From positions 1-64,000 of IMG/VR virus record IMGVR_UViG_3300028800_000001: 64,000 nucleotides of DNA; one strand, written 5' to 3'. Positions within the stretch are counted from its first letter, which is position 1, and each line of letters begins with the position of its first letter. Positions 954 to 40,638 of this stretch are shown here, piece by piece. The notes beneath the pieces are model-generated. The model saw only the letters and a list, made by a program, of their open reading frames with translations. It had not been told where the DNA came from and did no database searches. The translations under genes and the position numbers were made by a program.

Positions 954-1135
954 GAAATCTCCTTTTTGGAAAACAGAATGCCGGTCGCTTTACTTATTTC
1001 TATCAGCAGGCCGTTAAGTGACACATTACAAAGCTGGAGTGAAGGAAATGCTCCGACAACGGTAGCAAAATAATAGCCAGAAACGTGCTTGAGGGTGATA
1101 AGACAACGCGAAGTGCGAATTGTATATGGGTGCAT
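947..1135 (-). CDS. hypothetical protein
   Basis: RBS GAGGAG, first gene after promoter 1173-1227. Confidence 0.65.
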   Translation of the reverse strand: MHPYTIRTSRCLITLKHVSGYYFATVVGAFPSLQLCNVSLNGLLIEISKATGILFSKKEISC

Positions 1136-1172
1136 TAGTTTTCTCCTCGAATACTATTTTTCTTCTTTAACA

Positions 1173-1227
1173 AGTATACCTGCTCTCCTCTGTTACGTCA
1201 AGAATTAATTCTCTGTATTTTCAGAAA
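1173..1227 (-). promoter_or_regulatory. sigma70-type promoter with upstream palindromic box (class I)
   Basis: TTGACG-17-TATACT; TTTCTGAAA centre 1223, 22 nt from -35. Confidence 0.85.
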
Positions 1228-1243
1228 GGAGAGCAAGAAAAAA

Positions 1244-1567
1244 CTACCAGGATACCCAAAAGCGAAATTCGCCAATTCCACCATCATTGGGTGGGAACTC
1301 GTTGACGAAGAGGGTGAGAATTTCTTTTACCCAGGCAGGAGTAACTTCTTCACGGCTCCAGGTATCGAAGTCCATCCTAAAGTAGCAGCCGTTGTGGATT
1401 TCGTTTAATCCAAGTATCCAGTGCCAAAAGTTCTGATATGGACGGCTACGGTCTTCCCACGTCTTGCTATAATTGTCTATATCAATGCTATATTTCTCGT
1501 TTATCCAGGCTTCGCACTCATGATAATCATATGCTGGTTCCTGCTGCTTGGGCTTCGGTTTCTCCAC
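1244..1567 (-). CDS. hypothetical phage protein
   Basis: 107-aa ORF in operon-like run. Confidence 0.7.
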   Translation of the reverse strand: MEKPKPKQQEPAYDYHECEAWINEKYSIDIDNYSKTWEDRSRPYQNFWHWILGLNEIHNGCYFRMDFDTWSREEVTPAWVKEILTLFVNEFPPNDGGIGEFRFWVSW

Positions 1568-1835
1568 TCGTTTTCTCCTCTCTGTTGCGTAGTACTACTG
1601 CATGCCGATAATCTCCACGTGTGTGAAAGAAACGCTCATGCTCTATCTCAGAATGACGAAACACCATATCGAGCAGATCCCACCAATCGTTCGGGTCGTT
1701 GCTCTCGTATTCTGGCTCTACCTCAACGTACGCGAGCCAATCCAGGTAGTTTGCAATACCATTTTCTATTTCTGGCAGCGAGAAGACGCGTTGGTAATAC
1801 GTGCTCTCGTAGCCAAGTAAGATGTCTCTACTCAT
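1527..1835 (-). CDS. hypothetical protein, paralog of 1836-2117
   Basis: Shared YxxYY.R.FS.PEI.N.I.NYL.W ... HxEIE. Confidence 0.75.
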   Translation of the reverse strand: MSRDILLGYESTYYQRVFSLPEIENGIANYLDWLAYVEVEPEYESNDPNDWWDLLDMVFRHSEIEHERFFHTRGDYRHAVVLRNREEKTSGETEAQAAGTSI

Positions 1836-2117
1836 CTACAGCTCCTTTGCGCGTGCTTCAATTTGTGTTTCATACTTCTCGGCATTGATCACAACATCGC
1901 GGCTGTAGTTCACTAGCCCCTTGCAGACGATTTGCTGTTCAATTTCAGCGTGGTAGAGGACGGTCTCCAGGTGATATTGCCAGTCTTCTCTGTCGGTTCC
2001 TTCAACTTCAGGCTGCATACCTTCGCGACGATTCCAGGCCAGGTAATTGAGAATAGCGTTATCAATCTCTGGCTCTGAAAATGCTCGTTCGTAGTACTCG
2101 CTATAATAGACGTTCAT
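1836..2117 (-). CDS. hypothetical protein, paralog of 1527-1835
   Basis: As above. Confidence 0.75.
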   Translation of the reverse strand: MNVYYSEYYERAFSEPEIDNAILNYLAWNRREGMQPEVEGTDREDWQYHLETVLYHAEIEQQIVCKGLVNYSRDVVINAEKYETQIEARAKEL

Positions 2118-2823: not shown

Positions 2824-3557
2824 TAAAAATCCTCTTCCTTCCACGCAGCAACCGGCGCGGTGTCTTGTGTGAGCTCTTGCCCACACAGCAGCGCCCAATA
2901 GAGCGCATCTTGCAACAATTTTTCTCCCAGACTTTGTTGGCTATACGCCTTTTTCCAGGCAAGGCTATATTTACCCCTTATTTTTTGTAGGTAAACGTGA
3001 AGATCACCAGACTGAAAATGGTAATTCTTACCGTTAGCAACGTGCGCTGCAAGTTCACGCACATACTGATCGCTAAAGGGCATGGGATATTTTTCTACAG
3101 GGCTCGTTGCGTTACGTGCAATCATGCGCTCTAGCTCTTTGCGGTGTGCGCTCAAAAATTCGTAAAGGGTTGCAATATCAGCAACAGGGAAGAAATCACC
3201 ATCCAGGTATGCCTGATGCTCTCCTTTTTCAAAGAAGAAAGCGATGGCATCTTCGTCACGGCTAAGCACTTTTCCAGGCGGAACAAAGAGCTTACTATCA
3301 CGGGGAAACGCAACGAGAAGCCCAAGAGTGGTTGCCCAGGTGTCCAGGTAGAGTAAGAGCGTTTGCATTTCCTCCAGGCCGTACCAGCAATCTCTGAGCA
3401 TTATCCCATAGCGCAAATCGTCATTGAGCACGAGCGAAACGAAGCCATGTTCTGTAAGGGTAATATCTCCCTGTTCTCCGGCCTGTTTCTCTGCCTGCTC
3501 TTGTGAGAGGCCGTACCAGCGCAACTCTTCTATTCTGGTGAACTTTTCATCCATCAT
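2823..3557 (-). CDS. hypothetical protein
   Basis: 244-aa ORF, coupled overlaps. Confidence 0.75.
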   Translation of the reverse strand: MMDEKFTRIEELRWYGLSQEQAEKQAGEQGDITLTEHGFVSLVLNDDLRYGIMLRDCWYGLEEMQTLLLYLDTWATTLGLLVAFPRDSKLFVPPGKVLSRDEDAIAFFFEKGEHQAYLDGDFFPVADIATLYEFLSAHRKELERMIARNATSPVEKYPMPFSDQYVRELAAHVANGKNYHFQSGDLHVYLQKIRGKYSLAWKKAYSQQSLGEKLLQDALYWALLCGQELTQDTAPVAAWKEEDF

Positions 3558-3748
3558 TCTTTTCCTCCAATGTGTACTACAAGCGTCTCTTCTTGTAGTG
3601 CTTTGTAATTCCAGCAGCGCTCATCTAAAGTGGCGCGTACATACGCGTTTATCTCTTCTTGCGTCATCGGGTGCGGAAGGCGCACAATACAGCGCTGCTC
3701 TAGCGTTGCCTGTACCGTGACACAAATCTCAATTGGGGTAGTCTTCAT
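3554..3748 (-). CDS. hypothetical protein
   Basis: 64 aa, ATGA overlaps. Confidence 0.65.
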   Translation of the reverse strand: MKTTPIEICVTVQATLEQRCIVRLPHPMTQEEINAYVRATLDERCWNYKALQEETLVVHIGGKE

Positions 3749-3933
3749 ACACTTCCTCGCTTTAAGAGCTCTTGAAAGGTTACGCTTCCATCGCTCAGCG
3801 CTTCGAAACGTTCTTGCAAGACTCCAGCGCGTTCCAAAAACACGATTTGATATTCTGAGTCGCTGCCACAGGCACTTTGTAATCGTTCTAAAGCAGTCAA
3901 CAAGGTATAAATCTCTTCTTGTGTGAACTTCAT
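3745..3933 (-). CDS. hypothetical protein
   Basis: 62 aa, coupled. Confidence 0.65.
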   Translation of the reverse strand: MKFTQEEIYTLLTALERLQSACGSDSEYQIVFLERAGVLQERFEALSDGSVTFQELLKRGSV

Positions 3934-7950: not shown

Positions 7951-8361
7951 TCAGTCATAGAGTCCCATCTCTTGTGAGATGGCAGCGATTTCAGCAAGAC
8001 CTGTTTCACGTTCCTGCGCACGCCGTTGCTGAAACACCAGAACATCTTCTAATAAGACGCGCCTGTGTGTGCCAACACGAATAAAGGGGATAACACCATT
8101 TTCTAACAGTTTCACTAAGTGCGGCCTGGACATACTTAAAAGATCTGCCACTTGTTGTGTGGTCATTTCCTTTTGTCCAGCGATAAGGGCAACGTAATGC
8201 CCACGCGCTAATTGATGTGCGGCTTCCGCAAGTAAAATGCGCAGTGAAATTGGCAGAGAAACGGTTTGTTCTCCTATTTGCATCTGCGCACTTTCTTGTT
8301 GAAGCAATTTGCGTATGCTCTTGAGCACTTCTTGATCTTGTGGGTCGCCTTGAACAATCAT
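7951..8361 (-). CDS. excisionase-like HTH_17 DNA-binding protein
   Basis: MTTQQVADLLSMSRPHLVKLLENGVIPFIRVGTHRRV. Confidence 0.85.
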   Translation of the reverse strand: MIVQGDPQDQEVLKSIRKLLQQESAQMQIGEQTVSLPISLRILLAEAAHQLARGHYVALIAGQKEMTTQQVADLLSMSRPHLVKLLENGVIPFIRVGTHRRVLLEDVLVFQQRRAQERETGLAEIAAISQEMGLYD

Positions 8362-8426
8362 ATAAGTACACCTTTCTTTTTCTACGAGAAGTATACTATA
8401 TAATCGAAACAAAAGCAATAAGCGAA

Positions 8427-9431
8427 CTATTCGCCACGTGCATGCCAGAGCGCCGGAATGGTTTCCTCTTCGCGCTGGTAATAATCATCGCTGTGTGTTG
8501 AAAAGACATTGAAGGTTTTGACAACTGAAAGGGCTCCCAACTCATCTGAAAGCAGGGAAAGCCAGAGGCCAAGATACCAGTCAGCTTCGGGAACCGCCTG
8601 ATTGCGCACAATGCAAAAGTCTTTTGTGTAGTTGCCGTTCTCGAAGACGCGTAAGCGACGCTCTCTGTTTTTACGCGGATAGTCACGACGCAAACGGTAC
8701 ACGCGTCCTTCAAAACTGTAGCTTGGTACATCTAAGAAGTGATTACGTTCTAGTTGGGCGTAGAGCTCTTCTCCCAGGAACATTTGCAGCGTCGCTTCAG
8801 CGCGCTGTTCTGGTCGCAGACCATCGCCAAGATCGGTCTTTTCCGTCATTCTGATAAATGAGGTGAGCCGTTTCTTCGCTTCTTTTGCGCTCTTTGGCAG
8901 CGTAAAGTGTTCTGGCTGTTGACCGGCCATTGGGAAGCCACCATAGCGTGCGATATCGGCTGCATGAGCGTACCCGCACCATCCAGCAATACGGTCGTAG
9001 ACGCGCTCTATATCGGGGCGTCGATTGGCAAAGCCAATAATACAGCGTGAGGTATCGCCAGTGCCAAGCGTGAGGATCGTCTCCACGAAGAGATAGGTAC
9101 TGCTCTTGAGTGACGCATTGCGACTGGTAATAGCCCAGTCTCCAGCGAGACCACCATGCCAGCGCTCATCCATTTTTTCAGTCACGCCGTGAGGGTCAAT
9201 GACTCTATCGGTGCCTAGACGGAGAAAGTCCTGATGTGTATGCGCACTCGCGTAAAATCGGGTATGAGGACAATTTCGCTCTTCATCGCCACGTTTGAAA
9301 ATCCAGGCCGGACAATCACAAGAAAGATCGCCTGTCGTATTTTCCAACAGGCGATACCAGGAGTCAGGTGAACTGGACGATTCAAAGATGGCGACTAAGC
9401 GATATGCCCCTGATTGCAAACTTGCAGGCAT
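8427..9431 (-). CDS. SWIM Zn-finger-containing protein
   Basis: N-terminal SCDCPAW...CPH (CxC..CxH). Confidence 0.75.
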   Translation of the reverse strand: MPASLQSGAYRLVAIFESSSSPDSWYRLLENTTGDLSCDCPAWIFKRGDEERNCPHTRFYASAHTHQDFLRLGTDRVIDPHGVTEKMDERWHGGLAGDWAITSRNASLKSSTYLFVETILTLGTGDTSRCIIGFANRRPDIERVYDRIAGWCGYAHAADIARYGGFPMAGQQPEHFTLPKSAKEAKKRLTSFIRMTEKTDLGDGLRPEQRAEATLQMFLGEELYAQLERNHFLDVPSYSFEGRVYRLRRDYPRKNRERRLRVFENGNYTKDFCIVRNQAVPEADWYLGLWLSLLSDELGALSVVKTFNVFSTHSDDYYQREEETIPALWHARGE

Positions 9432-9443
9432 AACGCGTCTCCT

Positions 9444-9782
9444 TTAGCGACTTCCGCCAACGGTACGTGGAACAATAATTGTATGCGGTGCGGTGGTATC
9501 AAACTCACCTTTGTTGAGACGTTTGAGACCAACGGTCCCACCTTTTTCGGTGATTTCTTTGGCAGTGAAGACGGTGTTGCCGATGCTTTGGGCTTCGCTG
9601 ACCAAGCGCATTGCTTCACGCACCGCAGCCTGTCCTTCATCGTCAAGATAGTGCAGGGATTCGATGTCGTTAATCAGCGGATAGCTCAAACGCGTATCGC
9701 CAGACTTTCCAGTCACACGAAGTTCGGCAGTACCCAGGAGAATTCCCTCTGGAATAACTTTGTTTACTTTCTTACGTGGCAT
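9444..9782 (-). CDS. small protein with ubiquitin/ThiS-like C-terminal IIVPRTVGG(SR)
   Basis: C-terminal di-glycine motif preceded by hydrophobic strand; Ubl fold is inferred. Confidence 0.55.
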   Translation of the reverse strand: MPRKKVNKVIPEGILLGTAELRVTGKSGDTRLSYPLINDIESLHYLDDEGQAAVREAMRLVSEAQSIGNTVFTAKEITEKGGTVGLKRLNKGEFDTTAPHTIIVPRTVGGSR

Positions 9783-9860
9783 TTCTTTGTGTCCTTTCGG
9801 GAAGAATAAGAAGTACTCTTTTCCTTCTTATTCTTTTTGTCTTCTGAAAAAGCAGTAGTT

Positions 9861-11530: not shown

Positions 11531-11841
11531 TCAGCAAAGCTCCAGTCGTGCGTAAAGACAATATAAGCCACGAGCAGCTCCCAATAGACACTTTCCGTCC
11601 AATAGCGCCGCTCATAACGCATGCCGCCCCTATGGTGTTCTGAGAGCCATGTACGTAGCTCCAATACCTTCTCCCAGGCCACGCTCACGGCGTATTCCAG
11701 GCTGGTCTCTAAACAGGAAGAAATAGTGCAGAGCGCATCTTTATAGGCTTCATCGCGTATACTTCTTACTGGACTATTCATCTTCTCTTCTGCAATGAAG
11801 TGATAATACGCAATCACTTCCTCCAGACTGTCATAGTACAT
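11527..11841 (-). CDS. hypothetical protein
   Basis: 104 aa, coupled to tmk. Confidence 0.7.
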   Translation of the reverse strand: MYYDSLEEVIAYYHFIAEEKMNSPVRSIRDEAYKDALCTISSCLETSLEYAVSVAWEKVLELRTWLSEHHRGGMRYERRYWTESVYWELLVAYIVFTHDWSFAE

Positions 11842-12451
11842 ATCCTTTTTCCTTTAGGTATGAATAAGCAATAACTATGATGATATCGTGCAAGTCTTCT
11901 CTTGAGCGCGTGGCGTCCAGCACAAGTAGTCGTTTTGGGTGCTCTTTGGCGTATTCAAGATAGAGTGCACGTGTTTTCTGGTGCACTTCTAGCTCTCTTG
12001 TTTCGAAGCGGTCACCACTGGTTGTGTAGCGTTTTGCCGGATCTAGATCAAGCAGAAACGTAAGATCGGGTCGGAGACCATCACTTGCGAGCAACGAGAG
12101 CGCTTCAGCAAGACCGGTTCCTATTTTCTGGCCCTGATACACCACACTTGAGTCATAAAAGCGATCTGTAATGACGTGTGTACCGTTTGCAAGCGCAGGT
12201 AAGATCACTTTTTCAACATGCTCTGCACGTGCGGCCTGAAACAAGAAGGACTCAGCCAGTGCCGCAGGCTCATGTGCTTCAAGTAGTACAGTGCGTAGCT
12301 TTTCGCCAAAGGGTGTGCCTCCTGGCTCACGGGTACACAGGCAAGAGAGATGCTGGTGGGTAAACCACGCTTCAAGCAGTGCCACCTGTGTACTCTTGCC
12401 GGTACCATCAATTCCCTCGAAAGAAAAGAATACTCCCCTTTTCACAGTCAT
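11831..12451 (-). CDS. tmk: thymidylate kinase
   Basis: P-loop EGIDGTGKST, TREPGGT, DRF..S...YQG, PDLTFLLD. Confidence 0.95.
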   Translation of the reverse strand: MTVKRGVFFSFEGIDGTGKSTQVALLEAWFTHQHLSCLCTREPGGTPFGEKLRTVLLEAHEPAALAESFLFQAARAEHVEKVILPALANGTHVITDRFYDSSVVYQGQKIGTGLAEALSLLASDGLRPDLTFLLDLDPAKRYTTSGDRFETRELEVHQKTRALYLEYAKEHPKRLLVLDATRSREDLHDIIIVIAYSYLKEKGYVL

Positions 12452-19981: not shown

Positions 19982-20011
19982 AGAGAGAAGCAGGGGGTTT
20001 GCTTCTCTCTT
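19981..20011. terminator. bidirectional terminator
   Basis: AAGAGAGAAGC/GCTTCTCTCTT 11-bp stem between array and convergent peptidase gene. Confidence 0.8.
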
Positions 20012-20889
20012 TATGCAGGGGTAACAATATCGCCTTGTCCACCCCAATACTTTTCAAAGGTGGCGTAAGTCATCCACTGCATGTTGAGTCGAGAGCTGTC
20101 GGCCAGATGTACGTACTGGATGCCGCTGATTGTTTTTCCACCGATTACCACTAAGATATGTCCTCCGGTCCACTTGTAGGGCGGAAAACCAATGATGACA
20201 GGTGTCCCATTATTACCAGCGTTGACCACATCGTCAATTGTGGGATTGTTCATTTCCTGTGTCTTAAAACCAAAGTGCGAAGTGGTGTAGTCAATCCCTT
20301 GCCACTCCATGAGTCCCTGGTCGGTCGTGATTTCGTGAATACTACTTTCGTAGTTGATCACATCCGTGAGACTGAGCTTTTTTCCGTAGGCATCCATGAC
20401 CTCTTTCATGGAAGAAGCAGAACAGTCAGACGGCCACCAGTTATTATACTGATCAGTGGAGCTATAGTTGGCTGCGTTCGTCTGATCAATACGTACAAGT
20501 GCCTGGGAAGCATTGGCTGCTTTCGCAGGAGCCGCAACTGGCATCTTGACTTGTTTGGTGGTCACCACTGGCGTTGCTTTGGGCGAATTTTGTGTGACTA
20601 CCACCACGTTTTGCATCACGCCGCCATCCCAGCCAGTGATCACGCCAACCGGCCCAACTGGTCGTTGTGTCCAGGCAATAAATCCAAGAAATGTAATGCC
20701 AAAGACGATGACAAGTGCGCCATTTACCAGAAACTTCTTCAGGCGTGATGGACGGCGCAAGACGGGAAGTGGATCGGTCCTACGAACCGCAGTGCTGCGT
20801 GCAGGAACAACAGAGATAGCGCGAGACGGTGGTTCCTCAAGAATTGATTCGACCACCATCACACGCCGCGAGAGACTCGATTCTCTCAT
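20011..20889 (-). CDS. membrane-anchored C39-like (papain-fold) cysteine peptidase
   Basis: TM helix, low-complexity linker, then DCSASS...GGHILVV...LADSS (C-H-D). Confidence 0.8.
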   Translation of the reverse strand: MRESSLSRRVMVVESILEEPPSRAISVVPARSTAVRRTDPLPVLRRPSRLKKFLVNGALVIVFGITFLGFIAWTQRPVGPVGVITGWDGGVMQNVVVVTQNSPKATPVVTTKQVKMPVAAPAKAANASQALVRIDQTNAANYSSTDQYNNWWPSDCSASSMKEVMDAYGKKLSLTDVINYESSIHEITTDQGLMEWQGIDYTTSHFGFKTQEMNNPTIDDVVNAGNNGTPVIIGFPPYKWTGGHILVVIGGKTISGIQYVHLADSSRLNMQWMTYATFEKYWGGQGDIVTPA

Positions 20890-25180: not shown

Positions 25181-25236
25181 AGTATAGGCTTTTTTCACAA
25201 GCGCGTCAAGACTTTTTTCTAGTTATTTTCAGAAAG
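25181..25236 (-). promoter_or_regulatory. class I promoter + box
   Basis: TTGACG-17-TATACT; centre 25231 (22 nt). Confidence 0.85.
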
Positions 25237-26061
25237 GAAACGTTTGAGGCGATGAAATACGCCAGGGGAAACAGTCATGTTGTAGTCGGCAGGAAGGTCG
25301 TGCTGGTAGGCACGTTCCTGATATAGCAGGCGCGCAAGAGCATTGTAAACGAAAGCCGCTTCCTCGAAGGTCTCGTAGCTTCCACCGCTAAAAGTGCCAC
25401 CATCAATATGCAGTGCGACGCCGTATTTGGCACCCAGGCGACGAATGCCAGGAGGGAGAATGCGCAGATTGGCGCGGTGGTTATTGAGCTTGTTGCCATC
25501 AATATGACGCACACGCTGATTAAGCCAGAGTGCTTTGCCGCTCATGTGTTCTGCCACTTCGTGATGTAAATAGACATTCCCGTTATCGTTGCCAAGAGCA
25601 CGTGCACCACCATGACGTACACCGCTATACTCTTCGCTGCGAAAAACGAAGCCACGCTTATCCAGATTCCAGTGGTGCAGCGCAAAGATATCGAAGTCTT
25701 GTGCGTCAAGAAGCACTTTCTTGCCGTTATCTAAATAAATACCACTACGATCTGTTTGAAATTCAATCGCGTTTAGTTTAATGACGCCTTTGCGTTTGAG
25801 CGTATGTTGTGGTTTTGAGAGGAGCAAGTTGTCGCGTTCGCAGTTAAGCTGATCGTCATCCAGGTGCAGCACATGATAGTGCTTTCTGCGCAGCAGGCCG
25901 CTACGTTTGGCAATCTCTCTACGCAGCAAGACGTTACGACCTTGAATAGAGGCGACCACATCACCCCTGGTATTTCTCCGCCAGGGGTATGTTTCTATCA
26001 ACGCTGCGTCTTCTTCGCTCACACGCAGCACGCTTTCGTCAGGCAGCAAGAACTCGACCAT
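25219..26061 (-). CDS. HNH homing endonuclease (two HNH repeats, AP2-like C-terminus)
   Basis: HLDDDQLNCERDNL; HIDGNKLNNHRANL; G.YETFEEAAFVYN..A; ends SENN in the box. Confidence 0.85.
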   Translation of the reverse strand: MVEFLLPDESVLRVSEEDAALIETYPWRRNTRGDVVASIQGRNVLLRREIAKRSGLLRRKHYHVLHLDDDQLNCERDNLLLSKPQHTLKRKGVIKLNAIEFQTDRSGIYLDNGKKVLLDAQDFDIFALHHWNLDKRGFVFRSEEYSGVRHGGARALGNDNGNVYLHHEVAEHMSGKALWLNQRVRHIDGNKLNNHRANLRILPPGIRRLGAKYGVALHIDGGTFSGGSYETFEEAAFVYNALARLLYQERAYQHDLPADYNMTVSPGVFHRLKRFLSENN

Positions 26062-39094: not shown

Positions 39095-39532
39095 CTACAA
39101 AGTTTTCTTTCGATTAAGTTTGACACCTTCGTTTGCAATGGGTCTTTTATTGTATCTTTCTGGCAAGTGTGACCCATTTTTATTCACTATCGCGTTTAAG
39201 CAAGGCCCAAGACGATAGATAAGCTCTTCCTCGCATGTTTGGATAAAAACATCGTGCATTGCTATTTGCTCATACTCTTTTGCCGTAATTAATTCTTTAA
39301 GTTCCCATATCTCCATCGTCCAATTAAGAGATTCTGGCATATTGTCAAGAATAATTTGACCAACCCTGTCGGGCCAGGGAAGGCGAGCGCCTTTTCCCAG
39401 GTGTTCAAGTAGTCTGGTATAAGGATGAATAGAGCGCCCAACATAGAAGATAGTATCTTCATCTCTGTAGACATAGAGGCATTGCTCCTCCTCGAATGTT
39501 TCCATTGCTTTGCCAATAGTAGTTTGTATCAT
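39095..39532 (-). CDS. GIY-YIG nuclease family protein
   Basis: CLYVY...FYVGRS...RLLEH...E...P.LN. Confidence 0.8.
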   Translation of the reverse strand: MIQTTIGKAMETFEEEQCLYVYRDEDTIFYVGRSIHPYTRLLEHLGKGARLPWPDRVGQIILDNMPESLNWTMEIWELKELITAKEYEQIAMHDVFIQTCEEELIYRLGPCLNAIVNKNGSHLPERYNKRPIANEGVKLNRKKTL

Positions 39533-40638
39533 TCGTCATCTTCCTCGCTAATAATAACCCCATCGTTTGCGATAGAGCCGCGCTTTGCATAGTAAAGGGG
39601 CATGTGCGGAGTTTTCCAGCCTCCACCACTTTGCACTTTATCAAGCGGCGTGCCATTTTTGAGTGCGTCATAGACCCAAAAGTGTCTGGCATCGTGAGGT
39701 GAGAGATTTTTTACCCCAATTGTTTCTCCAAGAGTACGAACACGGGCATTGATAGCGCGTCTCGTAATGCGTTTGTTTTCGTAGCCCAGGAAAAGTGGCC
39801 CTGCCGTTCTTGGTATTCCAGCGACGCCTTCCTTGAGCATTCCTATATAATTCTCAGCCGCAATACGCGTATGCTTTTTAAGTTTTTGTTTATCGTGAAG
39901 ATTTGTCTTTTCATGATAGATATGCACATTGCCGGTCTGAAGGGAAAAATCTTCAATATTAAGATTGGCAACTTCGCCACAGCGTAATGCATGCTCAAAA
40001 AGCAATCCCGTAAGTAAGGCATCTCTCGCGGCCATTAATTCCTGCTGTTCCTTACTTTGTTTCTTCGGCTGCGTCGTCGCTCTCTTGATTTTAAAAACTT
40101 TTGACGTTTCTATTTCGACCGCATTTTCTTTTTTATTTCCAATGCGTGTTGGCACACCATCAGCGATTCGCTCATGATCACGATTTACTGCGAGCTTTCC
40201 ACTTTTGCCTCGCACCAATTGAATGAGATGTAATTCTTCGAGAGAAAGGAGTCCGGCCTGTTCAACAAGGTTACAATACTTCTTGATCGTGGTGAGGTAG
40301 ACGCAGATCGATCCCATTGCATACCCTTTGTTTTCCAACCAGACCTGAAAGCCAGAAACCAGGGCATCATTTATACCTTCCCAACTTTCAGGAATTTCGT
40401 AGAGTTCTTCTGATGCTCTGCCAACGCCAACAGCATAGAGGTAATTGCTGAAATGAGTCAGATCATTTTTCTGCCGCCTGCGGGTGTTTTCGGTGAGTCC
40501 TTTATGGTATTCGAGAAAGATATTGCTTGCCCTTGCTTTTCTGGCAGCGTTTCCAGCGCGATACAAATCGTCAGGATACAGTTGATCTGAAACACTGGTA
40601 TCCGTGACAAAGATAGTGATCGCCTTTTCTTCTTCCAT
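39529..40638 (-). CDS. tyrosine recombinase/integrase
   Basis: ALRCGEVA.L, K, SPHDARH, GGW, LYY (R-K-H-R-W-Y catalytic set). Confidence 0.92.
   Translation of the reverse strand: MEEEKAITIFVTDTSVSDQLYPDDLYRAGNAARKARASNIFLEYHKGLTENTRRRQKNDLTHFSNYLYAVGVGRASEELYEIPESWEGINDALVSGFQVWLENKGYAMGSICVYLTTIKKYCNLVEQAGLLSLEELHLIQLVRGKSGKLAVNRDHERIADGVPTRIGNKKENAVEIETSKVFKIKRATTQPKKQSKEQQELMAARDALLTGLLFEHALRCGEVANLNIEDFSLQTGNVHIYHEKTNLHDKQKLKKHTRIAAENYIGMLKEGVAGIPRTAGPLFLGYENKRITRRAINARVRTLGETIGVKNLSPHDARHFWVYDALKNGTPLDKVQSGGGWKTPHMPLYYAKRGSIANDGVIISEEDDE

Follow-up and report, generated by a model that had tools for sequence, protein, structure and literature searches.

The window, that is, the whole 64-kb stretch of DNA analysed here, is the beginning of a complete 327,295-bp virus record with direct terminal repeats from a jumbo soil phage. 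On its minus strand lie two adjacent genes, the first encoding a small protein that ends in Gly-Gly followed by Ser-Arg (PRTVGG-SR), and the second encoding a larger partner with a CxC...CxH motif and a downstream cysteine in the motif DFCIV (Table 1). The stop codon of the first gene (TAA) is followed directly by AGGAGA, six bases and the ATG of the second, and the two genes form one operon. The surrounding genes are small and unannotated, apart from an HTH_17 protein just downstream and a thymidylate kinase about 2 kb upstream. Contig pieces from four further rhizosphere metagenome runs cover the stretch, each run in part and X3, one of these runs, in all 30 bins, without differing letters or gaps. 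Three of these runs cover the GG-SR-stop, and therefore the sequence is not an assembly slip. No RNA run contains the stretch.

Table 1. Coordinates of the features of the two-gene module within the window.
Position	Strand	Feature	Remarks
9792..9795	-	AGGA ribosome-binding motif	9 nt before the ATG of the Ubl gene; read directly from the sequence
9444..9782	-	Gene for the predicted ubiquitin-like (beta-grasp) protein (Ubl)	112 aa; stop codon included
9453..9458	-	Codons of Gly109-Gly110, the conserved C-terminal di-glycine	Ser-Arg (9447..9452) and the stop follow
9432..9443	-	Intergenic 12 nt	AGGAGA, then a 6-nt spacer before the ATG of the partner gene; suggests translational coupling
8427..9431	-	Gene for the partner protein	334 aa; SWIM finger, middle domain, linker and C-terminal Cys domain
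9264..9320	-	SWIM-type zinc-finger motif	C38-x-C40...C54-x-H56
8937..9236	-	Middle domain	Residues about 66-165; predicted order a-b-b-b-a; no assigned family
8472..8831	-	C-terminal domain (CTD)	Residues about 201-320; conserved with the stand-alone membrane-anchored partners
8613..8615	-	Codon of Cys273	The only Cys invariant across both forms of the partner
8421..8435	-	Terminator-like hairpin over the stop codon of the partner gene	Followed by a T-rich run; consensus scan, pattern match only

Neither protein is known to the curated libraries. Searches of Pfam, PHROGs, PADLOC and NCBIfam gave no usable match for either protein or for their aligned homologs, and profile searches of PDB sequences were also empty. 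A megablast search against deposited phages gave no match.

To examine whether the pairing is conserved, we collected homologs of both proteins. The partner has more than 240 homologs at 45-63% identity, most of which are on chromosome-sized contigs of Ktedonobacteraceae and other Chloroflexota. We inspected 21 loci, consisting of 18 bacterial loci, one 79.7-kb viral genome, one phage-like contig and the window. In all 21, the gene directly upstream on the same strand is a homolog of the small protein, and in 19 of them it ends exactly in GG. Since a word search with the small protein had found only the query itself, we performed a profile search of 1.84 billion representative proteins, which returned 92 relatives. 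Of the 90 that we read, 65 end exactly in GG and five more end in GG plus 1 or 2 residues, while most of the rest look like truncated fragments. Against an assumed background of 0.6%, the binomial tail is about 4e-123. The aligned invariants are a Gly in the first hairpin loop (G-D/H), a near-invariant Phe (usually F-D-P) before the last strand, and the two terminal glycines.

The AlphaFold2 model of the small protein, obtained with a 20-sequence alignment, has a pLDDT of 84.5 and the element order b-b-a-a-b-b-b, followed by a low-confidence and presumably flexible tail (pLDDT 50 in the last block). The fold-search lists are almost entirely beta-grasp proteins, although at weak scores, and include MoaD, TtuB, SAMP1 and Mth1743. 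The nearest named Atlas cluster is a ThiS family (score 0.77). The initial annotation had proposed a ubiquitin-like GG-tailed protein, to be refuted if the fold is not beta-grasp and the GG is not conserved among homologs. The predicted topology and the conservation of the GG both agree with this proposal, and the reading as a ubiquitin-like protein stands. Nevertheless, this is a divergent member and not a close relative of any solved one.

The partner also models well (pLDDT 83.6, pTM 0.85). It is predicted to consist of a SWIM-like b-b-b-a head (strands 11-17, 25-30 and 36-38 and helix 55-62), the middle domain, a disordered linker (residues 174-189), and the CTD, composed of a long helix, four strands and further helices, with Cys273 in the fourth strand. 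The four residues of the SWIM motif are invariant in 29 sequences, although one homolog has lost the first Cys. A viral SWIM-type model matches the head at a Foldseek probability of 0.96, and a viral SWIM-type protein also appears for this part in the Atlas search. However, the threshold of Pfam PF04434 is not reached: there is no hit for the window protein, and one of the 29 homologs reaches E 0.45. No solved, viral or Atlas structure resembles the whole protein, and the middle domain draws only weak dsRBD-containing rows.

Notably, the SWIM finger, after which the initial annotation named the partner, is not the conserved core. Among 301 sampled Chloroflexota genomes, the full-length form occurs in 4, whereas the CTD alone occurs in 12 others, as ORFs of 133-158 aa. 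Eleven of these 12 begin with a hydrophobic helix, as judged from hydropathy only, suggesting a membrane anchor. In 9 of the 12, the gene immediately upstream is a Ubl of approximately 80 aa, with a gap of -4 to +12 nt; eight of these end in GG and one in GG plus Ala. The same arrangement appears on metagenome contigs. The stand-alone family counts at least 1,980 protein clusters, all unnamed, and its pattern found no viral relative. The relationship between the two forms is supported by an hhalign probability of 94% between the CTD and a stand-alone homolog, and by a profile of the mixed alignment of both forms, which hits 8508..8825 in the phage itself at E 2.7e-40. Thus, the SWIM finger is a lineage-specific addition, and the part that is conserved with the Ubl is the CTD.

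Across both architectures, the invariant residues of the CTD are Ala, Leu, Leu, Ser, Tyr, Arg, Val, Cys, Pro, Leu and Glu, with Tyr and Arg adjacent. Cys273 is invariant in the alignment of the full-length partners, in the mixed alignment and in the alignment of the stand-alone form. No His is invariant, and the window protein has Trp where many homologs have His, which argues against a classical Cys-His peptidase. The CTD has no Pfam or NCBIfam match, no PDB sequence match and, within the fold search of the whole protein, no PDB counterpart.

No third gene was found to be conserved in the 21 SWIM-type and 12 stand-alone loci, with the exception of a WGR-beta-propeller gene that follows the pair in 10 Ktedonobacteria loci. 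This gene is absent from the phage, and the CTD is not related to WGR (hhalign probability 0.2%). The initial annotation had noted that no E1 or JAB gene is visible in the window. This now extends to the complete phage genome, in which neither a ThiF-family E1 nor a Prok-JAB was found, and no E1 was found in the 79.7-kb viral genome. In contrast, the bacteria that carry the module have 3-7 ThiF-family genes, but none next to it. A weak Peptidase_C39-like protein at 20011..20889 was set aside as a GG-processing enzyme, because its N-terminal basic segment and hydrophobic helix, read by eye, should place the catalytic domain outside the cell; it also has a weak endolysin PHROG hit.

A maximum-likelihood tree separates the window's phage and three phage-like contigs from all of the bacterial sequences with 100/100 support, with about 50% identity within this group, while the 79.7-kb viral genome nests among the bacterial sequences. 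Large phages have therefore kept the module for a long time. The module is not a phage invention, however, but mainly a Chloroflexota bacterial family with one dedicated phage lineage. Intriguingly, one relative within the phage group has a Ubl ending in GG, then a separate 120-aa gene, X, and then the partner, while in another the Ubl is fused at its GG to an X homolog (BLASTP E 1e-12). The fusion is seen in two independent contigs. No homolog of X was found in the window's phage. Short extensions after the GG also occur elsewhere, namely AL, TR, TI, C and A. This layout mirrors that of ubiquitin precursors and hints at cleavage after the GG, although no cleavage is shown.

Given these observations, we favor, tentatively (probability about 0.4), a self-contained module in which the CTD binds the Ubl tail and its invariant Cys acts on the terminal glycine, either by carrying the activated Ubl as a thioester, as an E2 does, or by acting at the GG junction where a tail or fused protein follows. 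The ATP-dependent activation would be supplied in trans by a ThiF/MoeB-type enzyme of the host, and the SWIM head, found in Ktedonobacteria and their phages, or the membrane helix that replaces it in other Chloroflexota, would set the place of action. The phage lineage has kept its own diverged copy, presumably to modify, hijack or jam the homologous host pathway during infection. The conserved GG, the strict gene order and tight coupling, the sharing of only the CTD between two very different partner architectures, the variants extended or fused at the GG, and the ThiF-family genes of the bacteria are in line with this model. On the other hand, most members end in a free GG, so that a Cys could not capture the glycine without prior activation, and no activating enzyme accompanies the pair. 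A complex prediction of the Ubl with its partner gave no verdict (score 0.00), and there is no RNA or protein evidence. The initial annotation, which inferred a minimal phage modifier/conjugation or decoy module, is therefore only partly supported: the predicted topology, the conserved GG, the strict pairing and the lack of an E1 or JAB agree with it, but conjugation, processing, sulfur transfer and a decoy role all remain unproven.

The best surviving alternative, although we consider it unlikely, is a purely non-covalent pair, in which the Ubl would be a regulatory subunit, chaperone or inhibitor that docks on the CTD with its GG carboxylate as the plug, as with YukD, Hub1 or UBX-type beta-grasp proteins. 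The absence of an activating enzyme from any locus fits this view, as do the gene stoichiometry and coupling, which suit an obligate heterodimer, and other prokaryotic Ub-like proteins such as YukD are not conjugated (PMC1779556). However, non-conjugated Ub-like proteins generally lack a conserved terminal GG, as Hub1 does (PMC8431670), whereas here termination exactly after the GG is kept in most of the diverged representatives. Moreover, docking alone does not explain an invariant Cys in the partner, and fusion at the GG would bury the supposed plug.

A further doubtful possibility concerns the role rather than the chemistry, and can coexist with any of the chemistries considered here: the bacterial pair would be a defence or conflict system, and the phage copy a decoy or dominant-negative that titrates or mis-aims it. 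The likely hosts (Ktedonobacteria) carry homologs at 45-50% identity, the WGR-propeller gene follows in 10 of 18 bacterial loci but not in the phage, and one locus lies beside a type I restriction subunit and a CHAT protein. In addition, the phage forms lack the N-terminal helix of the bacterial Ubl, and the phage group is separate and long-lived. However, there is no PADLOC match to known anti-phage defence models, the bacterial neighbourhoods are otherwise unconserved and not clearly defence islands, and the phage proteins keep every invariant residue, including Cys273 and the GG, as expected of a working copy rather than a dead mimic.

Less likely still is a sulfur-carrier pair of the ThiS/MoaD/TtuB kind, in which a host E1-like enzyme would thiocarboxylate the GG end and the CTD would use or relay the sulfur through its Cys, as MoaD does with MoaE or TtuB with TtuA. 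All known bacterial GG-ended beta-grasp proteins that lack an E2 are sulfur carriers, often encoded next to their acceptor enzyme with the E1 elsewhere (PMC1779556, PMC10557695), and the weak structural matches, the nearest named Atlas cluster and the ThiF genes in the hosts are compatible with this reading. On the other hand, there is no Pfam ThiS/MoaD match, no rhodanese, cysteine desulfurase or biosynthetic gene is conserved nearby, and a 120-aa membrane-anchored domain, or a SWIM-headed protein, is unlike any known sulfur-insertion enzyme. Extensions and fusions at the GG also seem more typical of modifier precursors, although carriers of the QbsE type are probably trimmed as well. Finally, the absence of database families is all that speaks for chance ORFs or an accidental GG, which are excluded by the hundreds of homologs with conserved synteny, the confident structure models and the conservation of the GG.

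A more far-reaching reading, which is also unlikely on present evidence, is that the CTD is a new class of enzyme for ubiquitin-like proteins, a minimal conjugating, transferring or GG-processing enzyme unrelated in sequence to E1, E2, JAB or papain-type DUBs. The pair would then be a widespread, minimal protein-tagging system of Chloroflexota that works with a borrowed host activator or none at all, and that a lineage of large phages captured to tag or disarm host proteins. If the pair carries out covalent chemistry, it would be either the smallest such system known or one that depends on a housekeeping E1, which bears directly on how modifier systems grew out of sulfur carriers. If it does not, it is a clear case of a conserved terminal GG with another use.

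Bacterial ubiquitin-like conjugation has only recently been shown, and every known case comes with its own E1 and E2. The operons of BilABCD, Bub and type II CBASS Cap2/Cap3 (PMC10557695, PMC11601596, PMC10097602) encode an E1, an E2 (or an E1-E2 fusion) and a JAB or serine peptidase, whereas the only partner here is an orphan Cys domain, without a Pfam E2 or peptidase match. As compared to E2/UBC-fold enzymes, the CTD, whose likeness to them remains open since it was modelled only as part of the whole protein, is predicted to have one helix, a four-stranded meander with the Cys at its end and then helices, and it is the single Cys-bearing partner of a GG-ended Ubl; however, no E2 chain is among the listed structural matches of the whole-protein model, and there is no HPN-like motif. 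The rest of the partner has no counterpart in described SWIM proteins. With eukaryotic ubiquitin precursors, the module shares a GG followed by one or two residues, or by a whole unrelated protein fused at the GG in a relative, but no recognisable deubiquitinase was found and the processing is hypothetical. In a limited literature search, including two survey papers, we found no description of a Ubl paired with SWIM or with this domain. The module works most like the Ubl arm of the Bil, Bub or CBASS operons, or like the carriers ThiS, MoaD-MoaE, CysO and TtuB-TtuA, in which a GG-ended beta-grasp protein is encoded next to the protein that receives its tail and the E1-like activator is often encoded elsewhere (PMC1779556). 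It differs from the former in lacking an E1, E2 or peptidase in the locus, and from the latter in its lack of a family match, of nearby sulfur-mobilising genes and of a partner resembling a sulfur-insertion enzyme, and what appears to be new is the combination of a GG-ended, predicted beta-grasp protein with an unprecedented, minimal partner set.

Gene X, which encodes about 120 aa and matches no family, lies as a separate gene between the Ubl and the partner in the relative contig L046. In the contigs L004 (the closest relative contig) and L005, gene X is fused in frame to the Ubl exactly at the GG, whereas no homolog of it exists in the window's phage. An HTH_17 (excisionase-like) DNA-binding protein is encoded directly downstream of the pair in the window, and one is also encoded a few genes downstream in L004.

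Positions of the features
Sequence	Position	Strand	Feature
Window	7951..8418	-	HTH_17 (excisionase-like) DNA-binding protein
L004	2994..3407		HTH_17 (excisionase-like) DNA-binding protein
Window	11831..12451	-	Thymidylate kinase
Window	20011..20889	-	Protein weakly matching Peptidase_C39_2
Window	25219..26061	-	HNH_3 endonuclease protein
Window	39529..40638	-	Tyrosine recombinase
L004 and L046	219..905 (L004) and 3067..3788 (L046)		Gene X
L002/L003/L007-L020	about 1.1 kb downstream of the partner gene		WGR domain fused to a beta-propeller
L023; L031; P0183; P0168	G003:C5:803925-804943 (L023); 1070..2083 (L031)		Decayed or rearranged copies
L040, L041, L043			Gene of 360-400 aa preceding the stand-alone CTD

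In the Ktedonobacteria, a WGR domain fused to a beta-propeller, and in one case also to Jacalin, follows the pair in 10 of 18 loci. One of the loci is flanked by a type I restriction R subunit and a CHAT protein, and two are flanked by DDE transposases. Three of the stand-alone CTD genes have no Ubl upstream, and a conserved gene precedes them instead. Judging from its sequence alone, this gene looks like a glycosyltransferase, and an HTH-like gene lies on the opposite strand.

Decayed or rearranged copies were also observed. One bacterial partner gene is split by stop codons, while one homolog has Tyr in place of the first SWIM Cys, together with a divergent middle part. One 207-aa protein joins the N-terminus of the Ubl directly to the CTD, and one Ubl carries a Cys-rich tail after GGGG.

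Within the window, the thymidylate kinase (E 2e-47) is encoded about 2 kb upstream of the pair, and the HNH_3 match has an E-value of 4e-7. The window also encodes a 369-aa tyrosine recombinase (Phage_integrase, E 1.6e-19), although the phage is 327 kb in size and has direct terminal repeats. This is unusual for a jumbo phage, and hints at a temperate or plasmid-like lifestyle, or at a mobile insert. A further protein of 292 aa has a basic N-terminus, one hydrophobic helix and a C-terminal domain, and weakly matches Peptidase_C39_2 (E 2.3e-4, below the cut-off) and an endolysin PHROG (E 0.002). C39 peptidases cut after Gly-Gly. However, the predicted outside-facing topology of this protein, as read by eye, points to a wall-acting enzyme rather than a Ubl maturase.
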